A stretch of 64,000 nucleotides of DNA from Macrostomum lignano (lineage: Eukaryota), in contig NIVC01003154.1 of NCBI GenBank assembly GCA_002269645.1, positions 1-64,000 on the forward strand, written 5' to 3'. The position numbers and the translations under genes are program-made. The notes below the pieces were generated by a model, which saw nothing but the letters and a program-made list of their open reading frames with translations, was not told the origin of the DNA and ran no database searches. This document shows positions 2,758 to 58,043 of this stretch, piece after piece (the stretch's first letter is position 1; each line of letters begins with the position of its first letter).

Positions 2758-2865
2758 TTACAGCAGACACTCCTGAACATATTTGTGCTTCTTCTCGTCC
2801 CACGTCTGGAAGCAGCTCTTGCGGCTGGAATTACAGAATGTCTCACGGTGAGATGGGACTGCGGT

Positions 2866-2896
<31 letters not shown>

Positions 2897-2899
2897 TAG

Positions 2900-2944
<45 letters not shown>

Positions 2945-2947
2945 TAG

Positions 2948-2988
<41 letters not shown>

Positions 2989-2991
2989 TAG

Positions 2992-3040
<49 letters not shown>

Positions 3041-3043
3041 TAG

Positions 3044-3084
<41 letters not shown>

Positions 3085-3108
3085 TAGTGTCTTAGTGTCT
3101 GTCTGTCC

Positions 3109-3196
<88 letters not shown>

Positions 3197-3215
3197 TAGT
3201 GTCTGTCTGTCTTAG

Positions 3216-3260
<45 letters not shown>

Positions 3261-3288
3261 TAGTGTCTGTCTGTCCGTCTGTCTGTCC

Positions 3289-3338
<50 letters not shown>

Positions 3339-3341
3339 ATC

Positions 3342-3378
<37 letters not shown>

Positions 3379-3709
3379 TTGTATCTCTGTCTGTCTGTCT
3401 GTCTGTCTGTAAACACAAACGGCAATTTAATCTTACTTGAGCTGCCGGTTGAGCTCCTCATCCAGGTCCTGAGCAGACTCAGCTGCATCTGCTGTACAAA
3501 AAGTGTTGAGCAGTTGCTGAGTTACTTAAATCTTAAGTCATTTCAAATGCTCCGGTGATCGGATCGCTGAGTCAGCAAATTTTGACTTTACCCTCATCGC
3601 TGTCAAAAAGCTCAGCATCTTCAGCTTCATCTTGGTCCCGCAACGGGGCGGCCCGAGTAGCAGTGGAGGCCGCTAGGGCGAACAACACCAGCGCTAGCCA
3701 ACACTTCAT
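2758..3709 (-). CDS. Secreted prepropeptide, 79 aa, 3 exons (signal peptide + acidic pro-region + RK + 19-aa Cys-bridged peptide)
   Basis: Exons are 3709-3592, 3491-3437 and 2824-2758. Both introns are GT-AG with matching phases (G|gtaaag...tttttgtacag|CA; AA|gtaaga...taattccag|C). Translation: [79 protein letters not shown]. There is a TATA box upstream. It is absent from the ORF track because the exons are short. Confidence 0.85.
2863..3410. repeat. (TCTG)n microsatellite in prepropeptide intron 2
   Basis: Direct inspection. Confidence 0.95.
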
Positions 3710-4212: not shown

Positions 4213-4945
4213 GTTTTCAGTCCCTATCTACAGGTGTTCAGTCTCTGTCTACAGGTGTTCAGTCTCTGTCTACAGGTGTTCAGTCCCTATCTACAGGTGT
4301 TCAGTCTCTGTCTACAGGTGTTCAGTCTCTGTCTACAGGTGTTCAGTCTCTGTCTACAGGTGTTCAGTCCCTATCTACAGGTGTTCAGTCTCTGTCTACA
4401 GGTGTTCAGTCTCTGTCTACAGGTGTTCAGTCCCTGTCTACAGGTGTTCAGTCCCTGTCTACAGTTGTTCAGTCCCTATCTACAGGTGTTCAGTCTCTGT
4501 CTACAGGTGTTCAGTCTCTGTCTACAGGTGTTCAGTCCCTATCTACAGGTGTTCAGTCTCTGTCTACAGGTGTTCAGTCTCTGTCTACAGGTGTTCAGTC
4601 CCTGTCTACAGGTGTTCAGTCCCTGTCTACAGTTGTTCAGTCTCTGTCTACAGGGGTTCAGTCCCTGTCTACAGGTGTTCAGTCCCTGTCTACAGGTGTT
4701 CAGTCCCTGTCTACTGGTGTTCAGTCCCTATCTACAGGTTTTCATTTCCTGTCTACAGGTTTTGAGTCTCTATCTACAGGTGCTAAGTCTCTATCTGCAA
4801 GTGCTAAGTCTCTATCTACAGTTGCTAAGTCTATCTACAGGTGCTGAGTCTCCATCTACAGGTGCTGAGTCTCCATCTACAGGTGCTGAGTCTCCATCTA
4901 CAGGTCCTGAGTCTACATCTACGGGTGCTGAGTCTCTTTCTACAT
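4213..4945 (+). repeat. 21-bp minisatellite (tctacaggtgttcagtctctg)
   Basis: Direct inspection. The array decays toward its right end. Confidence 0.95.
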
Positions 4946-5419: not shown

Positions 5420-6500
5420 GGATAAGCCTGTAGACAGGGACTGAACACCTGTAGACAGGGACTGAACACTTGTAGACAGAGACTGAACACTTGTAGACAG
5501 TGACTGAACACTTGTAGACAGGGACTGAACACTTGTAGACAGAGACTGAACACTTGTAGACAGAGACTGAACACCTGTAGACAGGGACTGAACACCTGTA
5601 GACAGAGACTGAACACCGGGAGACAGAGACTGAACACCTGTAGACAGAGACTGAACGCTGGGAGACAGAGACTGAACACTTGTAGACAGTGACTGAACAC
5701 CTGTAGACAGGGACTGAACACTTGTAGACAGAGACTGAACACTTGTAGACAGTGACTGGACACTTGTAGACAGAGACTGAACACTTGTAGACAGTGACTG
5801 AACACCTGTAGACAGGGACTGAACACTTGTAGACAGAGACTGAACACCTGTAGACAGGGACTGAACACCTGTAGACAGGGACTGAACACCTGTAGACAGG
5901 GACTGAACACCTGTAGACAGAGACTGAACACCTGTAGACAGTGACTGAACACCTGTAGACAGGGACTGAACACTTGTAGACAGAGACTGAACACTTGTAG
6001 ACAGAGACTGAACACCTGTAGACAGGGACTGAACACCTGTAGACAGGGACTGAACACCTGTAGACAGGGACTGAACACCTGTAGACAGGGACTGAACACC
6101 TGTAGACAGGGACTGAACACCTGTAGACAGAGACTGAACACCTGTAGACAGAGACTGAACACCTGTAGACGGAGACTGAACACCTGTAGACAGGGACTGA
6201 ACACCTGTAGACAGAGACTGAACACCTGTAGACAGAGACTGAACACCGGGAGACAGAGACTGAACACCTGTAGACAGAGACTGACCTATAGACAGAGACT
6301 GAACACCTGTAGACAGAGACTGAACACCGGGAGACGGAGACTGAACACCTGTAGACAGAGACTGAACACCGGGAGACAGAGACTGAACACCTGTAGACAG
6401 AGACTGAACACCTGTAGACAGAGACTGAACACCGGGAGACAGAGACTGAACACCTGTAGACAGAGACTGAACGCTGGGAGACAGAGACTGAACACCTGTG
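5420..6500 (-). repeat. Same 21-bp minisatellite in inverted orientation
   Basis: The unit gactgaacacctgtagacaga is the reverse complement of the 4213-4945 unit. Confidence 0.95.
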
Positions 6501-7817: not shown

Positions 7818-9876
7818 TCACCGACAGCCGCAATAATCCACTTCCATGTCGTCGAACGACTTCAGTACGACCTCGTTGTGGCTGCCCTGGTACAGGATCG
7901 TCTTGGGCCGCAGCCTGGCGGGCACGCAGGTTGGCGGGCTGGCCTGGCCCGGCCGGCTGCTGTGCAGCGTCATCTGCAGGATGGCGTGGTTCGTTGCGTT
8001 GAACACGTCGCTCAGCGGGAACGGGCACTGCCCGGAGCAGGCGCCGGCATCGAAGCCCTGCGGCGCGATGATCCAACTGTCCCAGCCAATCTCGGCGAAG
8101 TCGACGTACAGCGGGCGACGCTGGCAGACCGCGGCCAGGTCTGAGGCCACGTGCGGCAGCTGCTGCCCTGAGGTGCCGCTGCTGTACCGGCGCCTCCTCC
8201 TGCCGCCGCCGCCGCCGCCGTCCCTGCGACGTCTCCTCTGGGCGGAGTGTCGAACTTCTCGACGCTGCCGACTCCGATGGTAAGTGACCAGCTGCGGCGG
8301 CTCAGCAACATCTCGCCGACGTCGAGAGTGAACCGACGTGGCCGGCGTCCAGGTGCCCTCGGCGGCCGGACTCGCGGGTCGGACGGCCAGACGGACGGCG
8401 ATTCGTCCACGATCGGCTCGGCGGCAGGATTCGAACTCGTGTCTGTCCAGCTGAATGGCGAGTTCGCTGGCTCCGGCTGGAAGCAGGCCGACACCGGCCG
8501 GCCGGTCGCAGAGGTGAGCGGACACCCGGTGAGCGAGGAGGCTGCGACCGCGTCTGTGCAGTTCGAGGCCTCTGCGATGGAGGCGGAGGTGTACAGCCGC
8601 CGGCTGCTCCGTGGCATCCAGCAGAGAAGACGCGTTGAAGTTAGCAAGATCTGGTCTAGGCGTTCCTGTTGCAAGGACGGATGGAAATTGGGATCACTTT
8701 TTTGTCTGCTTTTCGTAGTTCCAGAAAGTTGAAAAGAATTATCCAGTCAACTGACCTGCGGCGTGTGGTTGTGGACGCGAAAATGGATAACTCATGTCCA
8801 GCAACTTTTTCTCTGCGTTTATCCCGGAATCAAGATTCCAGCAGTCATCTCCACAGTGTCTCATGCGGAGGTCTGGACCCTGGCCACCCAGGCTGACCCG
8901 CCATCCACCTACCCCAGCGACCGCCAGACAGGCACTTCAAATCATAGCATAACGGCACAGTCGGAAATACTTCCAGTTTTGTGTCAGCCATTAAGACCAA
9001 ATAATAATTCAAGTTGTTATTTTTGTCTCCGAGCTCATTAAGTAGGCTTTTTACTGGTCCCAAGTTTCTTTTGTTAAAATCGAAACACTCGTCCAGATTT
9101 TGATCTGAGGCTTGGATCTTTTTTGTGTCGGGAGGCACCTGCTTCACTAATTACACTGAACTTTCCATTTCGGAGTCAGTCCACGTGTGGCAACACTCTG
9201 CTTTGAAATTCTGTTCTCATGGTAACGGATGGCAATCTGAGACCTGCGCTTATCGAGAAATCTAAATGTCAAAATAGATTCGTCAATAACTAGGTAAGAA
9301 AATTGGAGTAAATCTGACGCTAAGGACTACTTAACAACATCGTTTTGATAAAAATACATGTAGTCTTTGTCTTCTAGAGTCTTTGTATCATAAATGTTTC
9401 TAGCCAGGCCGTCATTTGACGGTTGCAAAGCTTACTTATGCCAATTTTCAAGGGCTACAGTTCCCGTACCCAGAGATCGGAATTGTTGGCGAGATGGCAA
9501 AATCTTGAGCGGCGAGGCCCACATAAACGAGCTTAATTGACCTCGCAGCTCAACCCGAGCGCTCACCAATAAGTCCGTGGCTCACAACGGAGCTCACAGC
9601 GCCGGGAATCTCCGGCACGCCATCCTCCGGCCCCAGCCAGATATCCGGTTGGTCTCGCATCAGCCGGTACATCTGGCGCATATGGTCGCTTGTTGATCGC
9701 CATGTCGATGGCGGCGACGCTGGCGACAGTGTCGGGCGGGCGGCAGCCACGGCCAGCAGTTCGGTAGCGGAGGAGTTCGGCAGCTCGGCTGAGGTAGCCA
9801 GCAGCAGCAGCGACAGAAGCTGCAGCAGCAGCAGCGGCTGTGGCAGCTGCGGCAGCGATACGCGAGTTCGCTGCAT
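7818..9876 (-). CDS. BMP/GDF-type TGF-beta family ligand, about 385 aa, 2 coding exons
   Basis: Exon 9876-9567 holds the signal peptide and ends ATT G|gtgagc. Exon 8665-7818 starts after ccttgcaacag|GA, phase 1. The prodomain has an FNASSLLD...HLRLHR motif and polybasic furin sites. The mature domain CQRRPLYVDFAEIGWDSWIIAPQG...CSGQCPFPL...NATNHAILQ...TCVP...VVLKSFDDMEVDYCGCR matches the BMP2/4/GDF consensus. The orthologue cannot be assigned by eye. Confidence 0.93.
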
Positions 9877-15480: not shown

Positions 15481-16650
15481 TTAATTGGTGCCCACCCAGA
15501 CATCAAGGCGCTCTTAAAGGAATGCGTCTCCTAAATAATAAATTCTATCGTACAAGACTGGTGCCAATAAAAGTACACGCATCTTTTTCCCTTAAATTGG
15601 TATTCAAGCAAGCAGATCTAAATGTTAGTTGATTGAACTATTGTATGAACTAGTACATGCAGTAGTTAGTATTTTTAGCATAAAAACGTACACTTAACAC
15701 TTGTATATGATGCTGCACAAAAATCTGCATATTTTAATGTTTATATTGCTCACAATATCGACTTTGACATGTATGTATGTGCTATAAAAATGTATGCATG
15801 TGATAGCTTGTTTAGTTATAAAAAGTAAATGATTCTTATTCCATGCATTCTTATTTAAATGGATTAGGTTTTGTCTTTTGTTCTGAATGCGACAGAAACT
15901 AACATACATAGGAAATTCCACATATTGCCCATCATGCATTATAATTCAGTTTTTCTACTGGTAGTAGCGAGAGAAGCGTATTGCGGAATGGAGAAATACA
16001 TGTAATACATGACTTATAGTGAGGATCATGTCGAATATGTTGCTCTTTGAATCTGCAATTACGCCGCTAGATTGCGCAAACATGCATAAAATAAATAAAA
16101 GCATTGCAACCGGGAATCTAGACGTGATCCTATTTTGTTTACTTCATGCTTAGACAGTGGGGCACAACTCTTGGGAAGTGTGGAAAGACTCGACATTTTC
16201 ATGTATTTTAGAAAAAATCTAACGGCCGAATTTCCAGTTAAAACACGCGAAATTCTAAAATTAAACAAAAAACAAAAAGTTGCAGAATTTTTTAATGAAA
16301 AGAGTTTATATTAGAATATTTTTCAAAATAAAATTAAGCGAGAATTCTTGTTTTATACAGAAAATTACTTTTAAAGTATGGTTGTACTCAAATGTAGCTT
16401 GTTTTTAAAAAAAAAGCCTTAGCTAGAGTTGAATTTGCACTTTGCAGGTTCGTGTCGTGTTTTTTACATTTTCCATGACAAGATTGTATTTTTACGAGAG
16501 TGACGCTACTTACTCTTGTCCTATCTCCTGACGCAGACGGTGGCGATTAAGTGATAACTTTATCAATCGGTACACACTACTTGACTTCAGTTTTTGTGAA
16601 ATTTTTTACATCAGAGGAACTCAATTTATATTTTGTGAGTATAAAGCACA

Positions 16651-19600
16651 ATGCCAGCAAGTAATTATCCTAAGCGCATCTGGGACGCAAAAACTCGCGC
16701 TAGACCAGGTGGGCTGAATAATAAAGACTACTAAAATGTATATTGATATATATATCCTTTGACCATTATACTATGCGTCCACAGAGCATTGGCATCACAG
16801 ATGCCACAGTGGCATCTACACTCGTCCACAGGCATATAATTTATAGGCCTATCCTTTTAGTAGGCCACAAAAATTATTTTATAGCTGTCAAAGTTTTAAT
16901 TTTAATAATAATATTGATAGATAATAACTTTGTACATATACATTCAATTTTGCAATTATATTAGTATCAGGTCCACTTTTTAAATTTAAATAAAATTTTT
17001 ATCTAGTTTGATGTCTTATTTTTAAATGCCTTATTAGAGTCTATATTGTTATTTAGTAGGCCTAAGTCTTGAGTAGACTTTTCTGCTTTCTAGATTTAGA
17101 GTTATGGTCCATATTGCGGAAGGTTTTCTGTGTATGCTGGACACATTTTCATTGAATTTTTAATTGTACGCCAACAAATTTTAAATGTATGCCAACTTTC
17201 TTCAATGCCAAATGTATGCCAAAAAATGACAAATATTTAAATTTAAATTTAAATGACAAAAAATGATAACAATTTAATAACATGACAATTGTCGTGACGA
17301 TTTCGGTAATTAAAATGATTAGTAAATCAGAAAATAGTAGCAGAAAAAATGGTTTTTGAAATAACTTAACACAAGAAAATGCACGAAAAAATTATCTATG
17401 TTAATTTGTATGCCAGTGTACACCACACTCCAGATCATGTAGTATACGCCCAAAAATTCAGGCATGCATTGGCCTTGCACGCCAAAGTTAGGCATGCACA
17501 GTTGGTGTGCATCACTCTTGAGAAAATAGTATGCGTGCACACCTGGCGTGCACTTTATAGAATCACGCGTAAGAGCTATTGTAAAGTAGAAAAAAGATGA
17601 AAAAAGTTCATTTTTAAGCGCAAATTTCAAGCTTTCCAGTTTTTTCCAGCTTGTAAAAGACTATTTACACAATTTTTGCATGTATAAACTTTTCGCTGTA
17701 AATAGTATCGCCAAAAAAGCTTTAAAAGCAACAAAATTATCTAGTATTAAGGGTCTATTATGCAATTTAAAAAAAAAGGAAAAAAAGGTCGCCTGATTGC
17801 AGCGCATGGGCATTTTGGCGGACGGCGTCCGGCGCGGATCAGCCTGCGCGGCGCAGCATTGGTGGTGGACCAGGGGTAAGTCGCAAAAATGCCACCCCAT
17901 AGAATACGAGCGTAGTACTAAGTAGATGCCGAGGCATTTAGGCTTGATAAGACAGTCATAGTTACTCCTGCCGTTTACCCATTAATTTTGCTTTAGGGTT
18001 TCTTTCACAGGTAAGTCATTTCACAGCGTGGCGCAGGTTGTGTAGGCGTCTGGCGTACTTAAGCCATGCGCTGCAATAGGGAAAGGTCGTTTATTGTCAC
18101 AACGTAAAAAAGGGTCTTTTATTATCGCAACATTGGCATATTTTTGAGAATGGGCATGCACTAATTTTTTTCAGCGTGCATTTGTAATTATTCAATTTTT
18201 GTTTGGGCGTGCACCCAGCATGATCCGGACTATGGAGTGTATGCCACAGAACTCAAGTGTACGCCAGAAAATTCTGGCGTATACCCCTCCTTCTGCTATA
18301 TGGGTTATGGTTAATGCTTATAGCTTATGAGATATATATAGGCCTATGGCATGTCTAGCCATCAGCATAGGCCCTAGGATTGAAAATAAATTTGTTTTAT
18401 TATAACAAATGCAATATGCAATAATTTTAAATAAAATCACAAGTTTTTTAACAAATAAAAGCTATACATATAAACCCTTTAGAGTTGTACAAGTTTGACA
18501 ATAATGTATGAAAATATATGCAAGTCACATATATTATGATTTGCATATATATACCTACATATTCTTGCATATATATAAAGCCATGTGCAAGTACCCACAG
18601 AATATGTCTAGGATTTTATACCAAAAATTCTATCCTGGCTTAATATTAAAAAAGTACCTTAAGATGAAATCCAAAAATGTGAAATAAAATGGTAAAAACA
18701 ATTTGCAAACATTCAATGGAAGGTAATGTATCTAAAAAAAACATTTTGAAAGACAGATAAGTCTTTATAAAATAGTTCTAGACTAGTCAGAAACTATTGT
18801 TTTCATGCTTTACATTGCTGAATAAATGAGTAAAAAACCACAAAACAGTATTTTAAAAATCCAAGTTGACCAATTCACAATTTTTGCTTCACTTTTTTTC
18901 ATTTATAAACAATTTATAGACTTGTAATCTTTTTTCACTACTTAATAAACAGAAAGTATTCTGTATTTTATTTTTTTATTAAAAAAATATTTAAAAATAT
19001 GAAAAAATAAAGAATTTCTAAGGATTTCCAAGTTTTTCTAAAATCATATTAACTTGCAAAAATTCATACTAATTTAAAGTGCAAATTTGCCAGCAAACAT
19101 TCTTTTTCTAACAATAAATATACAGCTAATTCATTGTTGCAAAAGAATTTTTAAGTTGTTTTCTTTCATTTAAATATCAACTTGTATCATACATGCGCAA
19201 CTGCTGGCCGAGCTAGCCGATCTGGCCACCGTAAATTGTGGTGGACCAGGGTAAGTCGCAAAATTGAGTTGACCAAAAACGAAAAAATGCAAGAGGAAAG
19301 AGCAATATAGGGAAGTAAAATGGTGAAGCAAAAGAAAAACAAGTTGCAGCAGAAGCAAATTAAGTTGCACAAATGATTAGGTAAGTCGCAAAAGGAGCAA
19401 CTAAGTTGCAAAAAGGATTCGGTCAAGTCGCAAAAAGGATTAGGGTAAGTTGCAAAAGGATTAGGTAAGTCGCAAAAGGATTAGGTAAGTCGCAAAAGGA
19501 GCAACTAAGTCGCAAAAAGGATTAGGTCAAGTCGCAAAAAGATTAGGTAAGTCGCAAAAAGGATTAGGTAAGTCGCAAAAGGATTAGGTAAGTCGCAAAA

Positions 19601-22600
19601 AGGATTAGGTAAGTTGCAAAAGGATTAGGTAAGTCGCAAAAGGAGCAACTAAGTCGCAAAAAGGATTAGGTCAAGTCGCAAAAAGGATTAGGTAAGTTGC
19701 AAAAGGGTTAGGTAAGTTGCAAAAAGGATTAGGTAAGTCACAAAAGGATTAGGTAAGTCGCAAAAGGAGCAACTAAGTCGCAAAAAGGATTAGGTCAAGT
19801 CGCAAAAGGATTAGGTAAGTCGCAAAAAGGATTAGGTAAGTCACAAAAGGATTAGGTAAGTCACAAAAAGGATTAGGTAAGTCGCAAAAGGGTTAGGTAA
19901 GTTGCAAAAGGAGCAACTAAGTCGCAATAAGAGGGAAGTAAGTCGCAATCAGAGGCAATCAAGGGGTAGTAGGTGCAAGTGTGGCAGGAGAGCAAAAAAA
20001 CAGAATAGAAGCCTTCAACCACAGACAAGATCTTTGAAATCAGCAGCCTGTGTCAACAGTTTCCCATTGATTTCTTTAACTCCGGAGCAGGGGTCGGCAA
20101 AGTCCAGCTCGCGAAGCCCCTCTATCTGGCCCTCGCCCCTCGGGTTCTTTGAAACTTTCTAACTAGCAAGGTTGGTGTCTCTTCAACTCTCATCTCTCTC
20201 TTCTTCTCTACCTTGCCTCCCCTCTTCTCTCTCTCCCCCTTTTCCCTCTTCTCTCTCCTTTCATTTTTACTCTCCTCTCTTCTCCCCTCTCCTTTCTCCC
20301 CTTTTCTCTCTACCCTTTCTCCTCAATGCCCTCTTCTCTCCTCTTATCTTCAGCAAAAATGTGTGCATATTTTCTTACTTCAAAGTAGAGGGAATAGAAG
20401 ATTGGAGATAAGCAAACAGAGGAGAGGCAAGCGATGCAATGGGAGAAAAGATAGAAGATGAGAGAAAAGCTGAGGGAGGAGAGAGATGAGAGAGATGAGA
20501 GGAAAGAGGAAAGATATGATGATGGATGAGATCAGAAGAGAGGAAAGAGGAAAGAGGAGAGAAGAAAGGAGATAAGAGAGTAGACGAGAGAAGAGAGGAT
20601 AAGGAGGAGATAAGAGGAGAGTGAAGAGAGGAGAGATAAGAGAGTAGAGAAGAGAGGAGAGATGAGATGAGAGAGTGAAGTGGAGAGAGACGAGAGGAGA
20701 GATAAGAATGTAGACAGGAGACAGAAGAGATAAGAGAGGAGGAAAGAGAGGAGAGAGGAGAGGAAAGAGAGAAGGGATGAGGGATGAGAGAGAAAAGAAA
20801 AAGAGGATGAGAAGATTGAGGAAAGGAGAGAATTTGCAAAGGCCTCAAATCTTAATTTAACATGCATTTACTCCCATCCTTATTTGCCTTTTTCCTAACT
20901 GTTAACAAGTTTTTGTTTGAGCATGACTTCAAATTTAAGAATCTATGCAAAATAGTTCTGGGAATTGGAATTCAGTGGTTTCAAAATCTGTGGGTTTTCA
21001 CAGCTTGTATCTCTACTGGATTTGTATTCTGCATCTGATGAGCCATCTGAATCAGGGCTCTCATCTTCCATGCCAAATCGTCTAGCAAGTGAAATTATTC
21101 TTGAGCTATAGGCCACACTGTATTCACTTCACTTACTTCTAGACATTCATGAATCATGACTTTTGTCATTACATGTCTTTACTCATTGTCATCATTACTA
21201 ATTGCCTCAGGCCGCCACTACCGTAATGATATACTGATTAGCTGTAATAAAAACCGCGAAATCTGCACTAATTAACTTATTTTATAGCTTTATTGTTTTC
21301 AAATCACCAAAAACAAAATTTAAAAAATGTGCCTCCATTTTTTTTTTGGATTTTTGCCTTATATAAAATAAGAAAAAAATGAAATTTTACAAAGATGTTA
21401 TAAAATATTATTGAATACCACTTAGGAAAATTACTAATATACTAGAAATTTCTAGCACACTAATTGATAGTTTAGCCATTTTGGCATACCAATTTGAATA
21501 CCATTTAAGTTTAAAATAATTTTTTTGGCTTTTAATCACTAGAAACTCTAATTATATATCAATATTTTTAAAAAGGACATTCTTTGTGAGAAGGTTTTCT
21601 TAGTAAACTTATTCTTAAAGTCAATTGATAACAAAAGAGAAATATTGGCATAGGCCCTTCCATTATGAAACATGATTATACTTTTTGTAATATACCATAT
21701 TGTACCATCAGGACTATGGACTAAATATTTGATATCATTTGATATCATTTTTGTATCTCTATTATTGCATTTAATTTAAAGCAAAGCCAATAAGTATTAC
21801 ATTAATATTATAAAATTTAGTTTTGGGCATTTATTCAACCATTGTATAAAAAAACCTATAAAAAGTTGCTCATAAAATTCAAAGTGCCAAAAGTGTATAT
21901 TTTGGAGTAAAAAACTTGTGCAAAAATTTTGTGCCCAACTTTTTGCTCCAGAATTGTCATGCAAAGATTCTATCCTAGGTATTAAGTACAATAAATAGTG
22001 TTTAAGGTTAAAGATTAAGAGAAACCTATCAAATGTTTTTGACTTGCTTAACTGATTAGAAACATAGACAATTGGAAATATTGTCATTGTCTGAGACAAA
22101 AAACTAAACCATTTGATTTTGCTTTAAACCTAAGCCTAAACTTGGAATTATAAGGGTTTAGAATTATTAGGATAAAATTTTGTTTTATTGTTATGAATTT
22201 CATATTATTCTATATGTATATATTGTCTATTATTGTCTATTAGGCAAACTTACAAGGGATAATAGTATTAATAGCAAAATATATCCTTATTATAATGATT
22301 GTTCTTATAAATGACAGCTAGACAATACATAGTATTCTTAAAAAAAGTCATACCAGTAGATGCTAATACACTTTGGTTATTTGTCAAATAGTTGTAAAAT
22401 TCTAATAAGTAATTTTAAAAAAAATGAATCTAGATTGATAAACTATATATTTAACAATGACCAATATCTATTCAGTGTATAAATATATAAAAAATTTAAT
22501 AGTCTTTTTGGTATATAATTTTCTTTATGTTGGTTGCTTTTTTATTAGATTATTAGTCCTAAAGTTCTGGACTAAAATTTTGTACTATTGTCTATATTGT

Positions 22601-25600
22601 TTTCAGTAATTTATCAATATTGTTTGTCCTTGATTTATGATTTTTTGTTTCACTACCAAAATAAATAGTCATAACTATTAGTACAGCATTTAAAATACTA
22701 TAAATTTTATACATCAGTGTGAAAAGGTATTTATCTCCAAGAACTGGTTTCCAGTGTTTGGTTTTGATCATGATTTTATATTTTAAACCCTACCCTTACT
22801 CACTGCTTGAACAGAGCTCTACAAAGACGGCAATAACTACTGGGAGGCATACAACTATAAAGCATCACTTGATGTCAGCCACACCTCAGTGAAAGACAAT
22901 GTCGAACGAATCGATTCACGAAAAATCTCGTTGGAACAATTTCGAGAACGATTTGAACGACCATATAAGCCTGTGGTTATCACTCACGATACAGACAATT
23001 GGCAGGTAGGAATTCATGCTTATTTGGCTTGTGTTATGCTGATGAGTGAGTCATTGCGTGGTCAATGATCAACCAGTGTGACTAGGAATAGAGTATGATT
23101 GACTGCAATGACTGGGGGAGGTAATCAATGACCAACTGAAATGACTGAGGGGAATCAATGACTAACAGAAATGACTGAGGGGAATCAATGACCAACAAAA
23201 ATGACTGGAAAGTGGAATCAATGACCAACAGAAATGACTGAGGGGAGTCAATGACCAACAGAAATGACTGAGGGGAATCAATGACCAACAAGAATGACTG
23301 GAAAGTGGAATCAATGACCAACAGAAATGACTGAGGGGAGTCAATGACCAACAGAAATGACTGAGGGGAATCAATGACCAACTGCAATGACTAGGCGAGA
23401 GAAATCAATGGCCGACTGCAATGACTAGGCGAGGGGAATCAATGGCCGACTGCAATGACTAGGCGAGGGGAATCAATGGCCGACTGCAATGACTAGGCGA
23501 GGGGAATCAATGACCAACTGCAATGACAGAGAGGGGGAATCAATGACCGACTGCAATGACTGGGCGAGGGGAATCAATGGCCGACTGCAATGACTAGGCG
23601 AGGGGAATCAATGGCCGACTGCAATGAATAGGCGAGGGGAATCAATGGCCGACTGCAATGACTAGGCGAGGGGAATCAATGGCCGACTGCAATGACTAGG
23701 CGAGGGGAATCAATGACCGACTGCAATGACTAGGCGAGGGGAATCAATGGCCGACTGCAATGACTAGGCGAGGGGAATCAATGACCGACTGCAATGACTA
23801 GGCGAGGGGAATCAATGACCGACTGCAATGACTAGGCGAGGGGAATCAATGACCTACTACAATGACAGAGAGGGGGAATCATTGACCAACTGCAATGACT
23901 AGGCGAGGGGAATCAATGACCGACTGCAATGACTAGGCGAGGGGAATCAATGACCTACTACAATGACAGAGAGGGGGAATCATTGACCAACTGCAATGAC
24001 TAGGCGAGGGGAGTCAATGACCGACTGCAATGACTAGGCGAGGGGAATCAATGACCGACTGCAATGACTAGGCGAGGGGAATCAATGACCGACTGCAATG
24101 ACTAGGCGAGGGGAATCAATGACCTACTACAATGACAGAGAGGGGGAATCATTGACCAACTGCAATGACTAGGCGAGGGGAGTCAATGGCCGACTGCAAT
24201 GACTAGGCGAGAGGAATCAATGACAGAGAGGGGGAATCAATGGCCGACTGCAATGACTAGAGAGGGGAATCAATGACCAACTACAATGACAGAGAGGGGG
24301 AATCAATGACCGACTGCAATGACTGGGCGAGGGGAATCAATGACCAACTGCAATGACAGAGAGGGGGAATCAATGACCGACTGCAATGACTAGGCGAGGG
24401 GAATCAATGACCAACTGCAATGACTAGGCGAGGGGAATCAATGACCAACTACAATGACAGAGAGGGGAATCAATGACCAACTGCAATGACTAGGCGAGGG
24501 GAATCAATGACCAACTACAATGACAGAGAGGGGGAATCAATGGCCGACTGCAATGACTAGGCGAGGGGAATCAATGACCAACTACAATGACAGAGAGGGG
24601 GAATCAATGACCGACTGCAATGACTAGGCGAGGGGAATCAATGACCGACTGCAATGACTGGGAGAGGGGAATCAATGACCAACTACAATGACAGAGAGGG
24701 GGAATCAATGACCGACTGCAATGACTGGGAGAGGGGAATCAATGACCAACTGCAATGACTGGGAGAGAGGAATCAATGACCGACTGCAATGACTGGGAGA
24801 GAGGAATCAATGACAAACTGCAGTGACAAGGGATAGATGAATAGCTTATCGTGAGAAGTTTATATAATTATAAGAGACTAAAAATAAAACCCCATCACTG
24901 TCTCAGGCCTGCCGCAAGTGGACGGTGCCCAGGCTGAACAAAAAGTATCGAAATCAGCGCTTCAAATGCGGCGAAGACGACGACGGCTATTCGGTGCGCA
25001 TCAAGATGAAGTACTTCACGCAGTACATGCGCGCGAATAGCGACGACAGTCCGCTGTACATCTTTGACGGAAATTTTGGCGAGCATAGGAAGAAGCGCAA
25101 GTTGCTGGAGGATTACCGGGTACGGACCTGAGCGTGCTTGAATTGCACCTAAGTTATGCAGCCATCATCATGAGATAATCACTCCAATTAGCCATCATCA
25201 TGAGATAATCACTCCAATTAGCCATCATCATGAGATAATCACTCCAATTAGCCATCATCATGAGATAATCACTCCAATTAGCCATCATCATGAGATAATC
25301 ACTCCAATTAGCCATCATCATGAGATAATCACTCCAATTAGCCATCATCATGAGATAATCACTCCAATCATCAGATAATTACTCCAATTAGCCAGCATTA
25401 TCAGATAATCACTCCAATTAGCCAGCATTATCAGATAATCACTCCAATTAGCGAGCATTATCAGATAATCACCCCAATTAGCCATCATCATAAGATAATC
25501 ACTCCAATCATCAGATAATCACTCCAATCATCAGATAATCACTCCAATTAGCCAGCATTATCAGATAACCACTCCAATTAGCCAGCATTATCAGATAATC

Positions 25601-27314
25601 ACTCCAATTAGCCAGCATTATCAGATAAACACCTCAATTAGCCAGCATTATCAGATAATCACCCCAATTAGCCAGCATTATCAGATAATCACCCCAATTA
25701 GCCAGCATTATCAGATAATCACCCCAATTAGCCAGAATCATCAGATAATCACTTCAACTAGCCATCATCATCAGATAATCACTGCAATTAGCCATCATCA
25801 TCAGATAATCACCCCAATTAGCCATCATCATCAGATAATCACCCCAATTAGCCATCATCATCAGATAATCACTCCAGTTAGCCATCATCATCAGATAATC
25901 ACTCCAGTTAGCCATCATCATCAGATAATCACTCCAGTTAGCCATCATCATCAGATAATCACTCCAGTTAGCCACCATCATGAGATAATCACTCCAGTTA
26001 GCCACCATCATGAGATAATCACTCCAGTTAGCCACCATCATCAGATAATCACTCCAGTTAGCCATCATCATCAGATAATCACTCCAGTTAGCCATCATCA
26101 TCAGATAATCACCCCAATTAGCCATCATCATCAGATAATCACTCCAGTTAGCCACCATCATGAGATAATCACTCCAGTTAGCCACCATCATGAGATAATC
26201 ACTCCAGTTAGCCACCATCATGAGATAATCACTCCAATTAGCCATCATCATGAGATAATCACTCCAGTTAGCCACCATCATGAGATAATCACTCCAGTTA
26301 GCCACCATCATGAGATAATCACTCCAATTAGCCATCATCATGAGATAATCACTCCAGTTAGCCACCATCATGAGATAATCACTCCAGTTAGCCACCATCA
26401 TGAGATAATCACTCCAATTAGCCATCATCATGAGATAATCACTCCAGTTAGCCACCATCATCAGATAATCACTCTAATTAGCCATCATCAGATAATCACT
26501 CCAGTTAGCCACCATCATGAGATAATCACTGCAATCAGCCATCAGTAGACAATGACTCACCCCAACACCGCCGCAGGTGAGCCACCTGTTCCCCGAGGAC
26601 CTGTTCAGCCTGGCAGGCGAGCGGCGCCGGCCGCCATACCGCTGGTTCGTGATGGGCCCGGCCCGCAGCGGCACAGGCATTCACATCGATCCGCTGGGCA
26701 CGAGTGCGTGGAACGCGCTGGTCCGCGGGCACAAGCGCTGGTGCCTGTTCCCAATTGATGCGCCCAAGGATTTGGTCAAGCCAGCCGGCATCGAAGCCTC
26801 CAAACAGAAGGGCGAAGCAGCCGCCTGGTTCAGCTGCGTCTATCCTCGGACTCAACAGGCCGACTGGCCGGAGCGTTGGCGCCCACTGGAGATTCTTCAA
26901 AGACCCGGGGAGACAGTGTTCGTGCCCGGCGGCTGGTGGCATGTTGTGCTCAATCTTGACGACACGGTGGCCGTGACTCAGAACTTCTGCTCAAGCGTCA
27001 ACTTTCCAACCGTCTGGCACAAGACTAAACGTGGCCGGCCTAAAATGGCCAGAAAAGTGCTGGCCGAGTTGAAGCGGACGAGGCCTGACCTGGCCGCTGT
27101 CGCTGAGTCTATCGATACGAGTCGGCCTAGTGGATTTCACAGTTCATCCAGCAGCTCGTCTAGCAGCTCTTCTAGTAGCAGCAGCAGCAGCAGCGGCTCC
27201 GGAGACGATTCCGCGAGCTCAGACTCCGAGTCTGGCGATAGCGGAGTTGAGAGGACTAAAAAGCGGCGGCGTGAGTCTGAGCAGCAGGCATCCGCTACTA
27301 ATGGAGTTCACTGA
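16651..27314 (+). CDS. JMJD6: JmjC-domain protein JMJD6 (arginine demethylase/lysyl hydroxylase, PSR), about 399 aa, 4 exons
   Basis: Exons are 16651-16708 ([19 protein letters not shown]), 22815-23005 (DNVERID...FERPYKPVV), 24907-25119 ([18 protein letters not shown]...DSPLYIFD) and 26577-27314 ([30 protein letters not shown]...[16 protein letters not shown]...poly-Ser). All introns are GT-AG and in phase. The motifs match JMJD6 along its whole length. Confidence 0.96.
18666..19187 (+). repeat. AT-rich dispersed repeat, copy 1 (copy 2 at 57451-57970)
   Basis: It aligns colinearly over about 520 bp with 57451-57970 (e.g. gtaatgtatctaaaaaa, aaactattgttttcatgcttta, ttaagttgttttctttcatttaaatat). 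Confidence 0.8.
19370..19935. repeat. About 20-bp minisatellite (aaaaggattaggtaagtcgc) in JMJD6 intron 1
   Basis: Direct inspection. Confidence 0.92.
20088..20830. mobile_element. hAT MITE-family left end followed by CT-rich and GA-rich low-complexity tracts
   Basis: The stretch caggggtcggcaaa...cgcgaagcccctctatctggccctc matches the 40009 left end. The right TIR was not found. Confidence 0.55.
23060..24830. repeat. About 34-bp minisatellite (gaatcaatgaccgactgcaatgactaggcgaggg) filling JMJD6 intron 2
   Basis: Direct inspection. Confidence 0.95.
25150..26545. repeat. 30-bp minisatellite (ttagccatcatcatgagataatcactccaa) filling JMJD6 intron 3
   Basis: Direct inspection. Confidence 0.95.
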
Positions 27315-27559
27315 CTGTTGAGCAGAATGATTGATTAATGAATGAAAGTAGAAGAGTACAGTGCGTGGTTTTTTTATTTATATACTCGTATTTTTTCCTC
27401 CGTAACAACTGACTCCTGACCTGACGGGACGGGACGGGAGAGAGTTAAGCGCCGATTAACTTTAATGAATTTAGAGCCGTACGCAGGCTTATATAAATCC
27501 GCCCCCCCCCCGTAGTAATTTAGGATTCTTCAAAATTCAGTTAAAGAAGAGCCCCAATA

Positions 27560-29830
27560 ACCCTCTCCAATCCGCCCCAATAAGCCTCTCAAATCCGCCC
27601 TCTAGAACCATCTCAAATCCGCCCTCTAGAACCATCTCAAATCCGCCCTCTAGAACCATCTCAAATCCGCCCTCTAGAACCATCTCAAATCCGCCCTCTA
27701 GAACCATCTCAAATCCGCCCTCTACAACCCTCTCTAATGCGCCCTCTACAACCCTCTCTAATGCGCCCTCTAAAACCCTCTCTAATGCGCCCTCTAAAAC
27801 CCTCTCTAATGCGCCCTCTAAAACCCTCTCTAATGCGCCCTCTAAAACCCTCTCTAATGCGCCCTCTAAAACCCTCTCTAATGCGCCCTCTAAAACCCTC
27901 TCTAATGCGCCCTCTAAAACCCTCTCTAATGCGCCCTCTAAAACCCTCTCAAATGCGCCCTCTAAAACCCTCTCTAATGCGCCCTCTAAAACCCTCTCTA
28001 ATGCGCCCTCTAAAACCCTCTCTAATGCGCCCTCTAAAACCCTCTCAAATCCGCCCTCTAAAACCCTCTCTAATGCGCCCTCTAAAACCCTCTCTAATGC
28101 GCCCTCTAGAACCCTCTCAAATCCGCCCTCTAGAACCATCTCAAATCCGCCCTCTAGAACCCTCTCAAATTCGCCCTCTAGAACCCTCTCAAATCCGCCC
28201 TCTAAAACCATCTCAAATCCGCCCTCTAGAACCATCTCAAATCCGCCCTCTAGAACCATCTCAAATCCGCCCTCTAGAACCATCTCAAATCCGCCCTCTA
28301 GAACCATCTCAAATCCGCCCTCTAGAACCCTCTCAAATCCGCCCGAAAAACCATCTCAAATCCGCCCTCTAGAACCATCTCAAATCCGCCCTCTAGAACC
28401 ATCTCAAATCCACCCTCTAGAACCATCTCAAATCCGCCCTCTAGAACCATCTCAAATCCGCCCTCTAGAACCATCTCAAATCCGCCCTCTAGAACCATCT
28501 CAAATCCGCCCTCTAGAACCATCTCAAATCCGCCCTCTAGAACCATCTCAAATCCGCCCTCTAGAACCATCTCAAATCCGCCCTCTAGAACCATCTCAAA
28601 TCCGCCCTCTAGAACCATCTCAAATCCGCCCTCTAGAACCCTCTCAAATCCGCCCTCTAGAACCATCTCAAATCCGCCCTCTAGAACCATCTCAAACCCG
28701 CCCTCTAGAACCATCTCAAATCCGCCCTCAAGAACCATCTCAAATCCGCCCTCTAGAACCATCTCAAATCCGCCCTCTAGAACCATCTCAAATCCGCCCT
28801 CTAGAACCATCCCAAATCCGCCCTCTAGAACCCTCTCAAATCCGCCCGAAAGACCATCTCAAATCCGCCCTCTAGAACCATCTCAAATCCGCCCTCTAGA
28901 ACCATCTCAAACCCGCCCTCTAGAACCATCTCAAATCCGCCCTCTAGAACCATCTCAAATCCGCCCTCTAGAACCATCTTAAATCCGCCCTCTAGAACCA
29001 TCTCAAATCCGCCCTCTAGAACCATCTCAAATCCGCCCTCTAGAACCCTCTCAAATCCGCCCGAAAGACCATCTCAAATCCGCCCTCTAGAACCATCTCA
29101 AATCCGCCCTCTAGAACCATCTCAAATCCGCCCTCTAGAACCCTCTCAAATCCGCCCTCTAGAACCATCTCAAATCCGCCCTCTAGAACCATCTCAAATC
29201 CGCCCTCTAGAACCATCTCAAATCCGCCCTCTAGAACCATCTCAAATCCGCCCTCTAGAACCATCTCAAATCCGCCCTCTAGAACCATCTCAAATCCGCC
29301 CTCTAGAACCCTCTCAAATCCGCCCGAAAGACCATCTCAAATCCGCCCTCTAAAACCCTCTCTAATGCGCCCTCTAAAACCCTCTCAAATCCGCCCTCTA
29401 AAACCCTCTCTAATGCGCCCTCTAAAACCCTCTCAAATCCGCCCTCTAAAACCCTCTCAAATCCGCCCTCTAAAACCCTCTCAAATCCGCCCTCTAAAAC
29501 CCTCTCAAATCCGCCCTCTAAAACCCTCTCTAATGCGCCCTCTAAAACCCTCTCAAATCCGCCCTCTAAAACCCTCTCAAATCCGCCCTCTAAAACCCTC
29601 TCAAATCCGCCCTCTAAAACCCTCTCTAATGCGCCCTCTAAAACCCTCTCAAATCCGCCCTCTAAAACCCTCTCAAATCCGCCCTCTAAAACCCTCTCTA
29701 ATGCGCCCTCTAAAACCCTCTCAAATCCGCCCTCTAAAACCCTCTCAAATCCGCCCTCTAGAACCCTCTCAAATCCGCCCTCTAGAACCATCTCAAATCC
29801 GCCCTCAAGAACCCTCTGAAATCCGCCCCA
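27560..29830. repeat. 24-bp minisatellite (aatccgccctctagaaccatctca), two variant blocks
   Basis: Direct inspection. Confidence 0.95.
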
Positions 29831-30539
29831 ATAAATTTTGCCATCTGAATGACCAGAAGCGCTTTTATAAATTTCGATCCCTTTTCATTGTAACTAAACT
29901 TTTAGTTTGTTATTATTGATCAACAGTGAATTGTGTTGTGAATGATTGCGGAAAATTACTTCAAAATATTCTTACCTAAACTTCACAGCAAGCAACTATT
30001 GTGTGTTCGCTAAATTATTTATAATTAAACTTCTAAGTGTATTACATGCGAAGTTAAAAGTACTTTATTTACTACTGTTTATCCGTTTGTACAAACAAAT
30101 TCGCACAGCAAATAAAGTTGGAAAACAATAAAAATGATAAATTTAACCAAATGCCCGATATCTTTCCGTGTCTAAACAGAATTTCCCGAGAAAAAATCGC
30201 GTATACTACTAACAATACTGGTACTCGCGTATTGCATCAACGGCGGCTGTTAAAGCAGATAGTTTAATTATTATAATTTGTTTGCTCGATCTACTTCGTA
30301 CCTGCGACTTAATGTTGTTGCTCTGATAAATTTTATCATGTCTTTTTCTAACTGCGCTACTGTTGAAAATATAATTTGTATGGATTTAAATGGTGCGAAA
30401 AAGTTTAACAAACTGTTGCGAACTGTTTTTATGTGTCCAAATATATCTATTTTTATGCTAAAAAATATGACTTGGCTGCTTTTTATTGCGCTTGAGCCGC
30501 TGCTCGACCCTCAGTGCTTCTCAGAAAGAAGTTCCGATG

Positions 30540-31247: not shown

Positions 31248-34200
31248 AATCCGCTGCCGTCTCAGTCCACCGACCCGGTGGGTCACATCGTGCACTTCGT
31301 GACCTCCTGGGAGGCGGCGAAGATGTGGCCATTCAGCTGCTTCGGCAATCCGCACTGGCCCAGCCTCCCAGAGCTGGCCGACATCAGCCCAGAGGAGCTC
31401 CGACTGGACGCTTATCAGAGTCGAACCGGCCCAGCTGCGTGGAGCGCCGAGCACCTGGCCAAGATGGCCAGCCTTGCCCAGGAGTACTCGGCTAAACGGC
31501 AGGCCATCAAGCAGCCGAATGCGGCTGTGTTAGAAGCGCTGGTCAGTTTATTTCCCATTGAAATCCGTTTATTGTTGTTAAACGGGGGTGGGAGCAGTTG
31601 CTACTAGCGGATCAGTCTGGGAGGGGCTCTGCCGCTGATGGCCCGAGATACCCACTAGATTAGTTAGACCCTAACGTCTTGGCTAGGGCTGGGTGTGAAC
31701 TACTACTAACCCAAGCCTATGGACTAAGGCGCCGCCAACCCAAAAGTGAAATCAGGGACGGTGCTAGGACCGAGTCCATCCAGGCCACCACCCAGCAGAC
31801 AAGTCTTTCGTAGTGCGCGCGAAAAAAGAGTTTGAAAAGCTTAGTTTGCTACTTAGAGCGGTCCGAGAGCGGGGAAACCCCAGAAGTCTACGGAAAAGCA
31901 ATGGTTAGGAACTTAGGGATTTGGCTGGAAGGCTTGTTTCCAAGGGCGAGTCTCCTATCAAGAGGTAACTTTGCAAACCCTCCCTATTGGGCTGCAAGCC
32001 ACAAGGGTGTCACCTATCCAGCTTTACGAGGAGAAGTCAAAAAGTAATGATAATTTTGTTTTCACGAGTGTCAAACTTAAAATTAGAATCTACTTTTCTA
32101 CATAGTCCCCCTCCAGGGTCAGACACTTCTCCATGCGGTGTCGCCATCTCTCCAGGCCGTTCGCGGAGAACTCAGGAGGCTGTGCAGCAAGCCACTGTAC
32201 AGTAGCCTTTTTGGCAGCCTCTTGGTCCTCATGTTGGACTCCTTTGATTGCTTCCTTCAGCTTGGGAACCAAAAAAGTCTTAAAGAGCCAAATCAGAGCT
32301 ATATGGAGGATGCTAGAGGATTTCCCAGCGGAAATCTCGAAGGGGTTCACGGCAAAGCCGAGAAGTGTGGGCTGGTGCATTGTCGTGGTGAAAGAGAATC
32401 ACACGGTGCAGCTTGCCAGGTCGCTTTTTGGCCAGTTCGGAGTGGAGCTTTTGCAGAAGCGACACATATTAGGTGTCATTGATGGTCTTCTGGCCTTCCA
32501 AGAAGTCCACCATCACCACTCCCCCAACATCCCAGAAGATGGTCGCCAAGACCTTCGCTGCAGACCCTTCCGCACGGAACTTCTTGGGGCCCGCTGAACC
32601 TCGTGGCAGCCACTCCTTGGATTGGACTTTGGACTCGGGATTATACTGAAATATTCATGTTTCATCCCCAGTCACTAAGCGTTGGTAAAAGTTTTCTGAA
32701 TCAGCGTCCAAGCAGTTCAGCAGGTTGATGGCGCACTCAGAGCGCTGAACCCGGTGTTCAGGCCGCAACAGCCGCGGGACCCAGCGGGCACTCAGCTTGC
32801 TCAGATCAAGACAGTCAATCACAATGGAATAAGCACCGCCATGAGAGATGGCCACTTGGTCAGCAATATTGTCTTTGGTCATGCACCGATCCTGCTTAAG
32901 TACCTGCTGCACAACTGCCACATTTTCCTCTGTGCGCAATGTTGTGGGCCTTCCCGACCACTGGGCGTCTTCCATGGACTCTCGGCCTTCCTTAAAAGCC
33001 TAAATCCAGCAGTAAATGGTTGGATCTGGTGGAGCAGTGTCCATATGGGCCTTCTTCAAAGCGTCAATGATTTCGGCTGTCTTCCAACCAAGTTTTACAA
33101 GAAACTTCACCTTAGTGCGAGCTTCGATTTTTGAATTTTCCGTTGCTGAAAGGGTATACTGTGATTAGAGCGTCATCATGCAGAAATCAGTCACTCTAGA
33201 AGAACCAAAACTCTATCAAATTAAGAACAAAAGATGTTTTTTTCAAACGAAAACAGTTGCATTTCAATACCTCTTATATTTTAAGCGTTACAACAAAACT
33301 ATCTTTACTTTTTGACTTCCCCTCGTAGATTGGACGCCGGGCCAAGGGGTCGGGAAAGGGGCACAAGGCGCAAGAGGACCCGGACTCAACCGGTATCCCC
33401 GATTCGGGACGAACTCATTCCCCAGGACTCCAGTCCACTGTCAGGATGAGAGCCAAGACACAAGGGCAGGGAGACAGCCAGAGGAGCCAGCAGATGGACC
33501 AAGGTCAGAGCAAGATGGACAAGATAAAATCCGTTTATTACTACATTGATATGAGCGCGTATTATGTTTATATTGTCATAGGACTCACAGATACTAGAAT
33601 ATAACTAGATGGGCCACTCAGGCATATATGCTTAGCAAAACAGCTTTCTACTTTCAGTTCAGTAGCAAAAAAGAATATATAAGCTTAAAAGAAAATTTTA
33701 TAAATGAGCCTTGTCTTTAAAAATACATTAAAATGCCTTAGTTTAACTTACTACTGAACTGAAAGTAGCTTGCACGCAAATGTGCTGAGTGGCCCATCTA
33801 GTTATTCTAGTATCTGTGGTAAAGACATGTTGCTTAAAACATATTATAGCATTAAAATTCGCTGCTTACCTACTGGAATCTTCACTGAACAAGTAGACTA
33901 TGTAGGACATTATTGAACATTTTGTGGTGATTTTTACAGAATACTTTAAGAGCCTCTGTAATTTTGCAACCTCAAAGATAGTCAGTCTCACAGCAGGTGT
34001 TGCCCAAACCAGCAGAAAATGACACAACAGCAAACCTCCATTTTCTGCTTGCAGAAGCAGTACGTTGCTCAGAATCAGCACCTCCGACCAAGCGCGCAGC
34101 AGAAAGCGCCCGCCGCCACAACTGGCGGCGGACTTGTCGCTCCACGTCGATCTGGCGGTTTGTTTGGCGAGGCGCCTACTGCGTTTGCTTCCAGCGCTGG

Positions 34201-35086
34201 TGGCGCCGCTGGTGGTCTGTTTAGCGGCGCCCAGACTTCGGCGTCTTCAACCGCAGGTGGCCTATTTTCTGGCGCCCAGACTTCTGCACCAAGTTCCGGT
34301 GGTCTGTTTAGTAGCGCCCAGACTTCGGTGTCTTCAACTCCAGGTGGCCTGTTTTCTGGCGCCCAGACTCAGGCGCCACGTTCTGGTGGTCTGTTTAGCG
34401 GCACCCAGACTTCGGTGTCTTCAACCGCAGGTGGCTTGTTTAGTAGCGCCCAGACTCAGGCACCACATTCGGGGGGTCTGTTTAGTGGCGCCCAGACCCA
34501 GGCGCCAAGTTCCGGTGGTCTGTTTAGTAGCGCCCAGACTTCATCGCCAAGTTCCGGTGGTCTGTTTAGCGGCGCCCAGACTTCAGCGCCAAGTTCCGGT
34601 GGTCTGTTTAGCGGCGCCCAGACTTCAGCGCCAAGTTCCGGTGGTCTGTTTAGCGGCGCCCAGACTTCGGTGTCTTCAACCGCTGGCGGCTTGTTTAGTA
34701 GCGCCCAGATCCAGGCGCCAAGTTCCGGTGGTCTATTTAGTAGCGCCCAGACTCCGGCGCCAAACTCCATCGGCACGTTTACTCAGCCGCCAAGCTTAGG
34801 GGGCGTCGCGCAGACGCAAGCGTCGGCATCAACAACTGCAACAACAACACTGGCAGCCACGACCGCCGCCTCAGCTTCCGCTTTCTCCTTCAGCAAGGCC
34901 GCCGGAGGCTCCGTGTCGAGTCCGACTTCGTCGACAACCGCCGGCAGCTTTGCCGAATCGGCGCTAAAATTGGACTACAGCCCGTTGGAGAGCCTGTCGG
35001 AAGCTGAGAAGGCGGCCTATCAAGCTGAGGAATTTGACCCGGCTTGTGTGCCGCTGAAAGCGCCGGCTATTGAGTTCTGTCGATAG
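31248..35086 (+). CDS. NUP42: Nucleoporin NUP42/NUPL2 (hCG1)-like; 5' exon not located
   Basis: Exon 31248-31541 (WEAAKMWPFSCF...DISPEELRL) resembles the NUP42 WE..W.FS..DISPEELRL block. Exon 34055-35086 has a repeat region and a C-terminal YSPLESLSEAEKAAYQAEEFDPACVPLKAP that resembles the Gle1-binding tail. The intron CTG|gtcagt...ttttctgcttgcag|AAG is phase 0. Confidence 0.85.
32027..33325 (-). mobile_element. Decayed mariner (Tc1/mariner) transposon, 1299 bp, in the NUP42 intron
   Basis: TA duplications lie at 32025-26 and 33326-27. The TIRs are CGAGGAGAAGTCAAAAAGTAA and its near-identical inverted copy. The transposase remnant keeps SGRP, WVP, LVTGDET, HHDNAPAH and HPPYSSDL motifs but has lost its start codon and carries stops and frameshifts. 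Confidence 0.95.
33586..33818. mobile_element. Small palindromic MITE/foldback element (CACAG...CTGTG ends)
   Basis: The ends form an inverted repeat of about 36 bp, cacagatactagaata(ta)actagatgggccactcag. There is also an internal inverted pair, ctactttcagttcagtag and ctactgaactgaaagtag. Confidence 0.7.
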
Positions 35087-48131: not shown

Positions 48132-56993
<8,862 letters not shown>

Positions 56994-57970: not shown

Positions 57971-58043
57971 AGTATTAGTATTTGTAATATGCCTATATTT
58001 AGACTTAAAAATTTTGGGTAAAAAATGGTACCACAAAATGTGA

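Follow-up and report, generated by a model that had tools for sequence, protein, structure and literature searches.

A spliced gene of the flatworm Macrostomum lignano with the layout of a lineage-restricted secretory pre-pro-peptide

Several types of peptide hormone, including somatostatin, cortistatin, urotensin II, allatostatin-C and MCH, are made as precursors that end in one non-amidated peptide whose two Cys residues are joined by a single disulfide. In the somatostatin, urotensin and allatostatin-C types the ring spans 4-10 residues and carries a core motif of the FWK(T) type. Release of SS-14 from preprosomatostatin takes place at an Arg-Lys pair, and Arg-Lys is the least used and least favored type of dibasic site in prohormone processing. 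A single disulfide also holds together the beta-hairpins of the host-defence peptides arenicin, thanatin and bactenecin, all of which are strongly cationic and amphipathic. Within the flatworms, the prohormone genes of Schmidtea mediterranea (spp and npp) were defined operationally as encoding fewer than 200 aa with a signal sequence and with a basic site next to the peptide (Collins et al. 2010, PMC2953531).

Here we analyze a stretch of 64,000 nucleotides (positions 1 to 64,000 of contig NIVC01003154.1, hereafter the window) in which a preliminary description, made from the letters alone, had proposed a three-exon gene for a secreted disulfide-loop peptide precursor. The flatworm origin suggested at that time is correct, the source being Macrostomum lignano, and the proposed layout of signal peptide, acidic spacer, RK site and two-Cys 19-mer was borne out when the sequence was read together with its hydropathy and charge. 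The first 20 residues contain Lys2, an uncharged 11-residue hydrophobic core (W4-A14, with a Kyte-Doolittle peak of 3.07 over residues 5-13), and, ahead of A21, the small residues Thr (-3) and Ala (-1); judged by rule of thumb, this N-terminus is signal-peptide-like and resembles the layout of a classical ER signal peptide. Residues 21-57 are strongly acidic (15 Asp or Glu versus 2 Lys or Arg, pI about 4) and were predicted to be disordered in both of our AlphaFold2 runs. The sole basic-pair candidate site, R59-K60 in the numbering of the 79-aa form, immediately precedes the C-terminal 19-mer, whose C-x14-C arrangement is built from the only two Cys residues beyond the signal peptide, Cys61 and Cys76. 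The 19-mer has a charge of -0.5 at pH 7 and a pI of 6.47, in agreement with the near-zero charge claimed earlier, and it is amphipathic neither as a helix nor as a strand (at 170 degrees its hydrophobic moment of 0.016 was exceeded by 99.7% of shuffles).

The resemblance to planarian spp and npp genes lies in the short precursor (78 or 79 aa), the signal-like N-terminus and the basic site flanking the candidate peptide, here RK directly before the 19-mer with cleavage predicted at this site; like many of the spp genes, the gene is also lineage-restricted and without similarity to other phyla. It differs from the catalogued prohormones in lacking sequence similarity to them and in having only one RK site, only one candidate peptide and no amidation signal, and whereas typical flatworm neuropeptide precursors are multi-copy and amidated, this precursor holds a single peptide without Gly. 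Likeness to the somatostatin type is by description: in both, a two-Cys, non-amidated peptide lies at the extreme C-terminus behind an Arg-Lys site. However, the ring of the window peptide has 14 residues, the FWK core is absent and no homology was detected, and because ring size, core motif and homology all differ we have not filed the 19-mer as a member of that type. With arenicin, thanatin and bactenecin it shares a length of about 19-21 residues, Cys near both ends and, in one AlphaFold2 run, a hairpin. In contrast to arenicin and thanatin, its charge is about -0.5 and its beta moment falls below that of 99.7% of its own shuffles, and the precursor has neither BRICHOS nor another known pro-domain of the host-defence hairpins. 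The earlier statement that the peptide is unlike cationic antimicrobial hairpins therefore stands, since the 19-mer is roughly neutral and not amphipathic.

The open reading frame of 79 codons was read directly from the sequence as three joined minus-strand exons with GT..AG borders and fitting phases (Table 1). Exons, splice signals and phases were as first described, with the exception of a 3-nt difference at the acceptor of exon 2, where the externally supported junction is 3592/3488 and not 3592/3491. This acceptor is a tandem CAGCAG (3494-3489), and use of the second AG drops one Ala to give a protein of 78 aa. The duplicate locus described below, L001, contains the downstream AG alone (acceptor CTGCAG/ATGCAG, with the slash marking the junction), and all three public protein models (P0001, P0002 and P0003) read DSDEDAAES and not DSDEADAAES, as expected from the 3488 acceptor. 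For these two reasons 3592/3488, giving 78 aa, is the supported junction; the 3592/3491 junction, which adds an Ala, may serve as an in-frame alternative in the window copy only. Intron 2 consists mostly of a (GACA)n microsatellite interrupted by CACTAA units (2866-3410), and its retention would truncate the protein because an in-frame TAA lies at the donor. The sequence element placed upstream of the gene in the preliminary description is present and recurs in L001; it is presumably a promoter element, and the pair of ATTAAA hexamers beyond the stop presumably provides poly(A) signals.

Table 1. Features of the gene and other Pfam-recognized coding segments, in window coordinates.
Feature	Position	Strand	Details
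Candidate TATA box TATATAAA	3803-3796	-	94 nt 5' of ATG; direct reading
Exon 1, coding part	3709-3592	-	118 nt; ATG at 3709; donor GTAAAG
Exon 1 product			M1-E39 plus first base of codon 40; annotated identically in the paralogue PAA83417.1
Codons 1-20, signal-peptide-like	3709-3650	-	Within exon 1
Intron 1	3591 to 3492 (79-aa form) or 3489 (78-aa form)	-	Donor GTAAAG; tandem CAGCAG acceptor
Exon 2	3491-3437 (55 nt) or 3488-3437 (52 nt)	-	Acceptor ...TTTGTACAG; donor GTAAGA
Exon 2 product			Second half of acidic spacer, optional leading Ala
Intron 2	3436-2825	-	Donor GTAAGA; acceptor TTCCAG
Exon 3, coding part	2824-2758	-	67 nt; acceptor CTGTAATTCCAG; stop TAA 2760-2758
R-K site	2823-2818	-	Exon 3
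19-mer tail	2817-2761	-	Exon 3
Two ATTAAA hexamers, candidate poly(A) signals	2618-2613, 2601-2596	-	140-160 nt 3' of stop
JmjC hydroxylase domain	26577-27314	+	Pfam
Nucleoporin FG-repeat region	34019-35086	+	Pfam
Protein kinase fragment	42635-43462	+	Pfam
RH1 (RILP-homology 1, JIP3/4-like) domain	56253-56993	-	Pfam

That this three-exon gene is real was confirmed, most decisively by the annotation of a duplicate, which was derived independently from transcripts. A protein search returned two M. lignano proteins, at 96% and 92% identity (A0A1I8HEB4 and PAA83417.1, the latter being BOX15_Mlig026256g1). PAA83417.1 is encoded at L001 on scaffold NIVC01000420.1, in three exons as in the window. 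The GenBank annotation of the assembly containing L001 was built from RNA-seq and de novo transcripts only, with ORFs called by TransDecoder (PMC5730564); because the annotation is transcript-derived, experimental support for the spliced mRNA exists at the family level. For the window copy this support comes by way of the 96% identical duplicate, and reads may multi-map. The gene had been called hidden in the preliminary description, which does not hold, as the protein family is deposited in GenBank and UniProt and the gene is already annotated there as an uncharacterized or hypothetical protein.

Beyond the exons, L001 and the window have in common the TATA box in the same context, the microsatellite intron and both ATTAAA signals. 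The microsatellite in intron 2 of L001 is composed of the same repeat at a different length, and the upstream flanks of the two loci are collinear at about 93% identity. By its sequence L001 is a duplicated segment, as expected in a recently polyploid genome. An exact-sequence look-up placed P0002 on an NCBI genome scaffold only and returned no record for P0001, and a tblastn search inside the window gave no extra copies, but microsatellite noise only, among the matches listed. A further entry of the same cluster, UniProt A0A1I8JI37 (P0003), matches the 78-aa isoform of the window over residues 1-78 and then runs on for 14 more residues because the stop is lost. Its C-terminal end fits a one-base insertion at the stop, from CTGCTGTAA to CTGCTGGTAA (window 2758-2763), and the entry may represent a genuine allele or paralogue, or else a fault in the assembly of the older genome.

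The gene lies among satellite DNA and other coding sequences. A 12-bp satellite (CAGACTCAGCTA, about 44 copies, 1953-2480) starts about 280 bp after the stop of the peptide gene and its minus strand reads through as an ORF of 155 aa resembling (AESV)n; L001 carries this array behind the paralogue as well. About 4 kb upstream and on the same strand is an ORF or exon (7818-8525, minus strand) encoding a complete TGF-beta ligand domain (Pfam TGF_beta, E = 1.4e-29) with a furin site of the RRRR type before the domain. Between this TGF-beta gene and the peptide gene, two long arrays of a 21-bp satellite (TTCAGTCTCTGTCTACAGGTG; 4216-4944 and 5427-6499) stand in opposite orientation about 480 bp apart and form a large inverted repeat. 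This arrangement, also found in L001, may reflect an element of the foldback type or a region prone to hairpin formation. Tandem arrays on the kilobase scale with extreme strand composition occupy 27500-29900, 46300-47700, 50300-51300, 52800-53900 and 55500-56250, and the GC skew reaches -0.66 at 28-30 kb, +0.35 at 46-48 kb and +0.42 at 52-54 kb. These arrays, which include (GACA)n/(TCTG)n repeats like those of intron 2, give rise to long artefactual ORFs in several frames. AT-rich stretches are located at 16000-24000 (GC 0.34-0.38) and 58000-60000 (GC 0.28), compared with a GC content of 0.44-0.56 elsewhere. A search of the whole window against Rfam gave no match. As judged from its Pfam-recognized exons (Table 1), the window is ordinary gene-bearing flatworm chromatin.

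Our best reading of the locus is that of a lineage-restricted secretory pre-pro-peptide. We assign a probability of roughly 0.55 to the joint proposition that this is a transcribed M. lignano gene, one of at least three near-identical copies from a recent genome duplication, and that it encodes a 78/79-aa secretory pre-pro-protein that is processed to a secreted 19-mer. In such a pathway, the N-terminal 20 residues would act as a cleavable signal peptide (TRA/AP, cut at the slash) and direct the chain into the ER co-translationally. The remaining 58 or 59 residues would comprise a disordered acidic spacer (net charge about -13) and a folded 19-residue module with two Cys residues, and this Cys pair would be oxidized in the ER, either as an intramolecular staple of a hairpin or as intermolecular bonds in a helical dimer. 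A PC2-type convertase would then cut after Arg-Lys, a carboxypeptidase would trim the basic residues off the spacer, and the non-amidated, roughly neutral 19-mer would be secreted to act outside the cell as a signal or as a gland peptide. Of this reading, the data show how the gene is built, that it has further family copies, that it is an orphan and how its domains are laid out. Signal-peptide cleavage, disulfide formation and bioactivity are what we infer from the sequence, and the same applies to cleavage at RK and release of the 19-mer, because RK is the least used dibasic type.

Counting against a prohormone are the presence of one site and one candidate peptide, the lack of a Gly for amidation, and the residue at P6, which is Arg in the window copy and Pro in both paralogues. 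Nevertheless, a role of the 19-mer as a peptide hormone, pheromone or toxin would be a fair hypothesis. A more specific proposal, which we make tentatively and regard as doubtful, is that the 19-mer is a Macrostomum-specific, neutral, disulfide-stapled hairpin that is released at RK and has its own receptor, serving in hormonal signaling, as a pheromone in mating or social contact, or as a gland-secreted effector. The gene id, the accessions and the peptide strings were absent from the full-text literature searched for expression or function, and no peptidomic detection of the 19-mer was found in the literature searched. Nor did the gene id occur in the supplements of PMC5816591, PMC12896417, PMC7336406, PMC5977470 and PMC12732829, an absence that is uninformative since their large tables are possibly incomplete.

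The main rival to this reading, and one that we hold to be rather unlikely, is that no processing at RK takes place and that the whole acidic protein of about 58 residues (pI about 4.2) is the secreted functional form. Such a product could be a component of a gland secretion, of seminal fluid, of mucus or of a matrix, with the Cys tail used for folding or for cross-linking of dimers. Its appeal comes in part from the poor quality of RK as a convertase site and in part from the acidic composition of the protein, which includes an S-x-E motif at Ser37-Asp-Glu. In addition, M. lignano is reported to express many small, secreted, rapidly evolving reproductive proteins (PMC5977470, PMC7336406). Against this rival, nothing in the literature searched placed the gene in a gland. 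Also against an unprocessed product is the arrangement of the precursor, in which the only basic pair is directly before the only structured, Cys-bearing segment, as the layout of a pro-peptide predicts.

The predicted fold of the tail bears on the same choice and divides along the two AlphaFold2 runs, in both of which the C-terminal module (residues 60-77) was the only confident structure. When an alignment of two sequences was used, residues 60-66 and 71-77 formed a hairpin (block means of pLDDT 91 and 84) whose symmetric strand register would set Cys61 opposite Cys76 as cross-strand partners, an outcome that favors a stapled peptide over the unprocessed protein. For the paralogue alone (Thr64Arg), residues 61-77 instead formed a single alpha-helix at the lower pLDDT of about 78, which places the Cys residues too far apart for anything other than bonds between molecules and so favors the unprocessed protein. 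An intramolecular disulfide in the tail is thus supported by one run and contradicted by the other. The single-disulfide beta-hairpin of the preliminary description is plausible as a model, yet it did not prove robust, because the two runs disagree. Among PDB structures, Foldseek matched the model to generic hairpins only (E > 2).

A second alternative, which we consider quite improbable, is that the locus produces a young, lineage-specific transcript whose ORF, arisen de novo or decaying, has no selected function, so that the signal-like start and the Cys tail would be fortuitous. The searches for relatives are compatible with this idea. A word-indexed search of 5.8 billion clusters at 90% identity retrieved the two M. 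lignano copies only, and a full HMMER (phmmer) scan of 1.84 billion representative proteins retrieved the query's own cluster only, although a short (78-residue) and compositionally biased query has little power for remote relatives at such database sizes. The preliminary description had not recognized the family, and we likewise obtained no Pfam, PDB or BLAST similarity, so that, within the reach of these databases, the family is an orphan. Conservation cannot be used to support function, since no homologue was found outside M. lignano. Two Pfam profiles, DBP10CT (E about 1e-3, 18-19 bits versus a cutoff of 27) and TrbK, were sub-threshold and were treated as chance. The protein has a WD(E/K)K(K/R)(H/K)KYV string in common with yeast Dbp10 (E = 1.3 in the PDB search), and phmmer against the PDB at E <= 10 returned ALR (E = 0.49) and DBP10 (E = 1.3) only.

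Comparison of the copies points in the same direction without deciding the matter. The two genomic copies diverge by 3.8% in exons and by about 3% in intron and flank, and because coding and non-coding divergence are alike, selection on the ORF is not demonstrated. The dN/dS ratio relative to the duplicate is 0.32 (p = 0.10), which leans toward constraint and is not significantly below 1; with nine substitutions only, such tests are almost powerless, so that their outcome weighs little against a selected function. The lost stop codon of P0003, with its 14 additional residues, likewise fits a frame under no selection. On the other hand, every copy examined retains an intact ORF, splice sites, TATA box and both Cys residues; of the five amino-acid differences between the genomic copies, three are conservative and lie within the signal peptide; and the combination of features is rare under the null model described below.

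It is very improbable indeed that there is no gene and that the ORF is a chance assembly of GT and AG sites in repeat-rich DNA. The region is full of microsatellites, GT..AG pairs are abundant, and a frame of 79 codons put together from chosen pieces is not improbable, so exon arithmetic alone proves little. Nevertheless, the same three exons were annotated independently from transcripts at the duplicate locus, and UniProt entries derived from MAKER/WormBase give the same protein. We also passed both strands of the 64 kb through a crude filter for a signal-like N-terminus, GTAA donors, pyrimidine-rich YAG acceptors, two introns and a product of at least 70 aa, and models were obtained from the ATG at 3709 on the minus strand alone. 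The one signal-like start observed compares with 0.03 expected per 64 kb in first-order Markov simulations, in which complete models occurred at 0.01 per 64 kb (1 of 100 simulations was positive). Since the filter was designed after the example had been seen, this test is supporting evidence only.

Finally, a divergent mitochondrial cytochrome bc1 hinge protein (UQCRH/QCR6), with a presequence, an acidic region and a Cys-containing C-terminal helix, would account for the automatic UniProt name of A0A1I8HEB4 and A0A1I8HUI3 ('UCR_hinge domain-containing') and for a superficial likeness to subunit 6 (small size, an acidic run in the N-terminal half, Cys near the C-terminus), but it is effectively refuted at the sequence level by the lack of Pfam, BLASTP or phmmer/PDB similarity, by two Cys residues rather than four after the N-terminal segment, and by an uncharged hydrophobic stretch of 11 residues such as ER signal peptides typically have. 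In detail, hmmscan at E <= 10 gave no hit to UCR_hinge (PF02320) for the window protein, P0001 or P0002, BLASTP against human UQCRH gave E = 38, and phmmer found no solved subunit-6 chain, whereas a human UQCRH query finds 27. The hinge fold, as seen in the bovine structure, is held by four Cys residues in two inter-helix disulfides, a framework for which Cys61 and Cys76, the only ones past the signal peptide, do not suffice. The UCR_hinge name thus looks like an annotation artefact. The other automatic name in the cluster, 'U22-Lycotoxin-Lsp1e_1' for A0A1I8JI37, was absent from the literature full text searched; the scan of 1.84 billion proteins returned no toxin, and two Cys residues contrast with the multi-disulfide, knottin-type framework of a spider lycotoxin. 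Current profiles support neither name, and neither should be carried forward.

The gene does not bear on a long-standing question, and unless its peptide is active its product belongs to the very large number of small secreted orphan proteins that flatworm genomes encode, with nothing mechanistically unusual about it. If the 19-mer is released and active, however, it would be a lineage-specific signaling or gland peptide in a flatworm that serves as a model for regeneration, ageing and sexual selection. A role of this kind is directly testable, because RNAi, in situ hybridization and transgenesis exist in M. lignano. If the proposal of a released hairpin with its own receptor is true, the 19-mer would be the founder of a new flatworm peptide family of recent origin, multiplied by whole-genome duplication.
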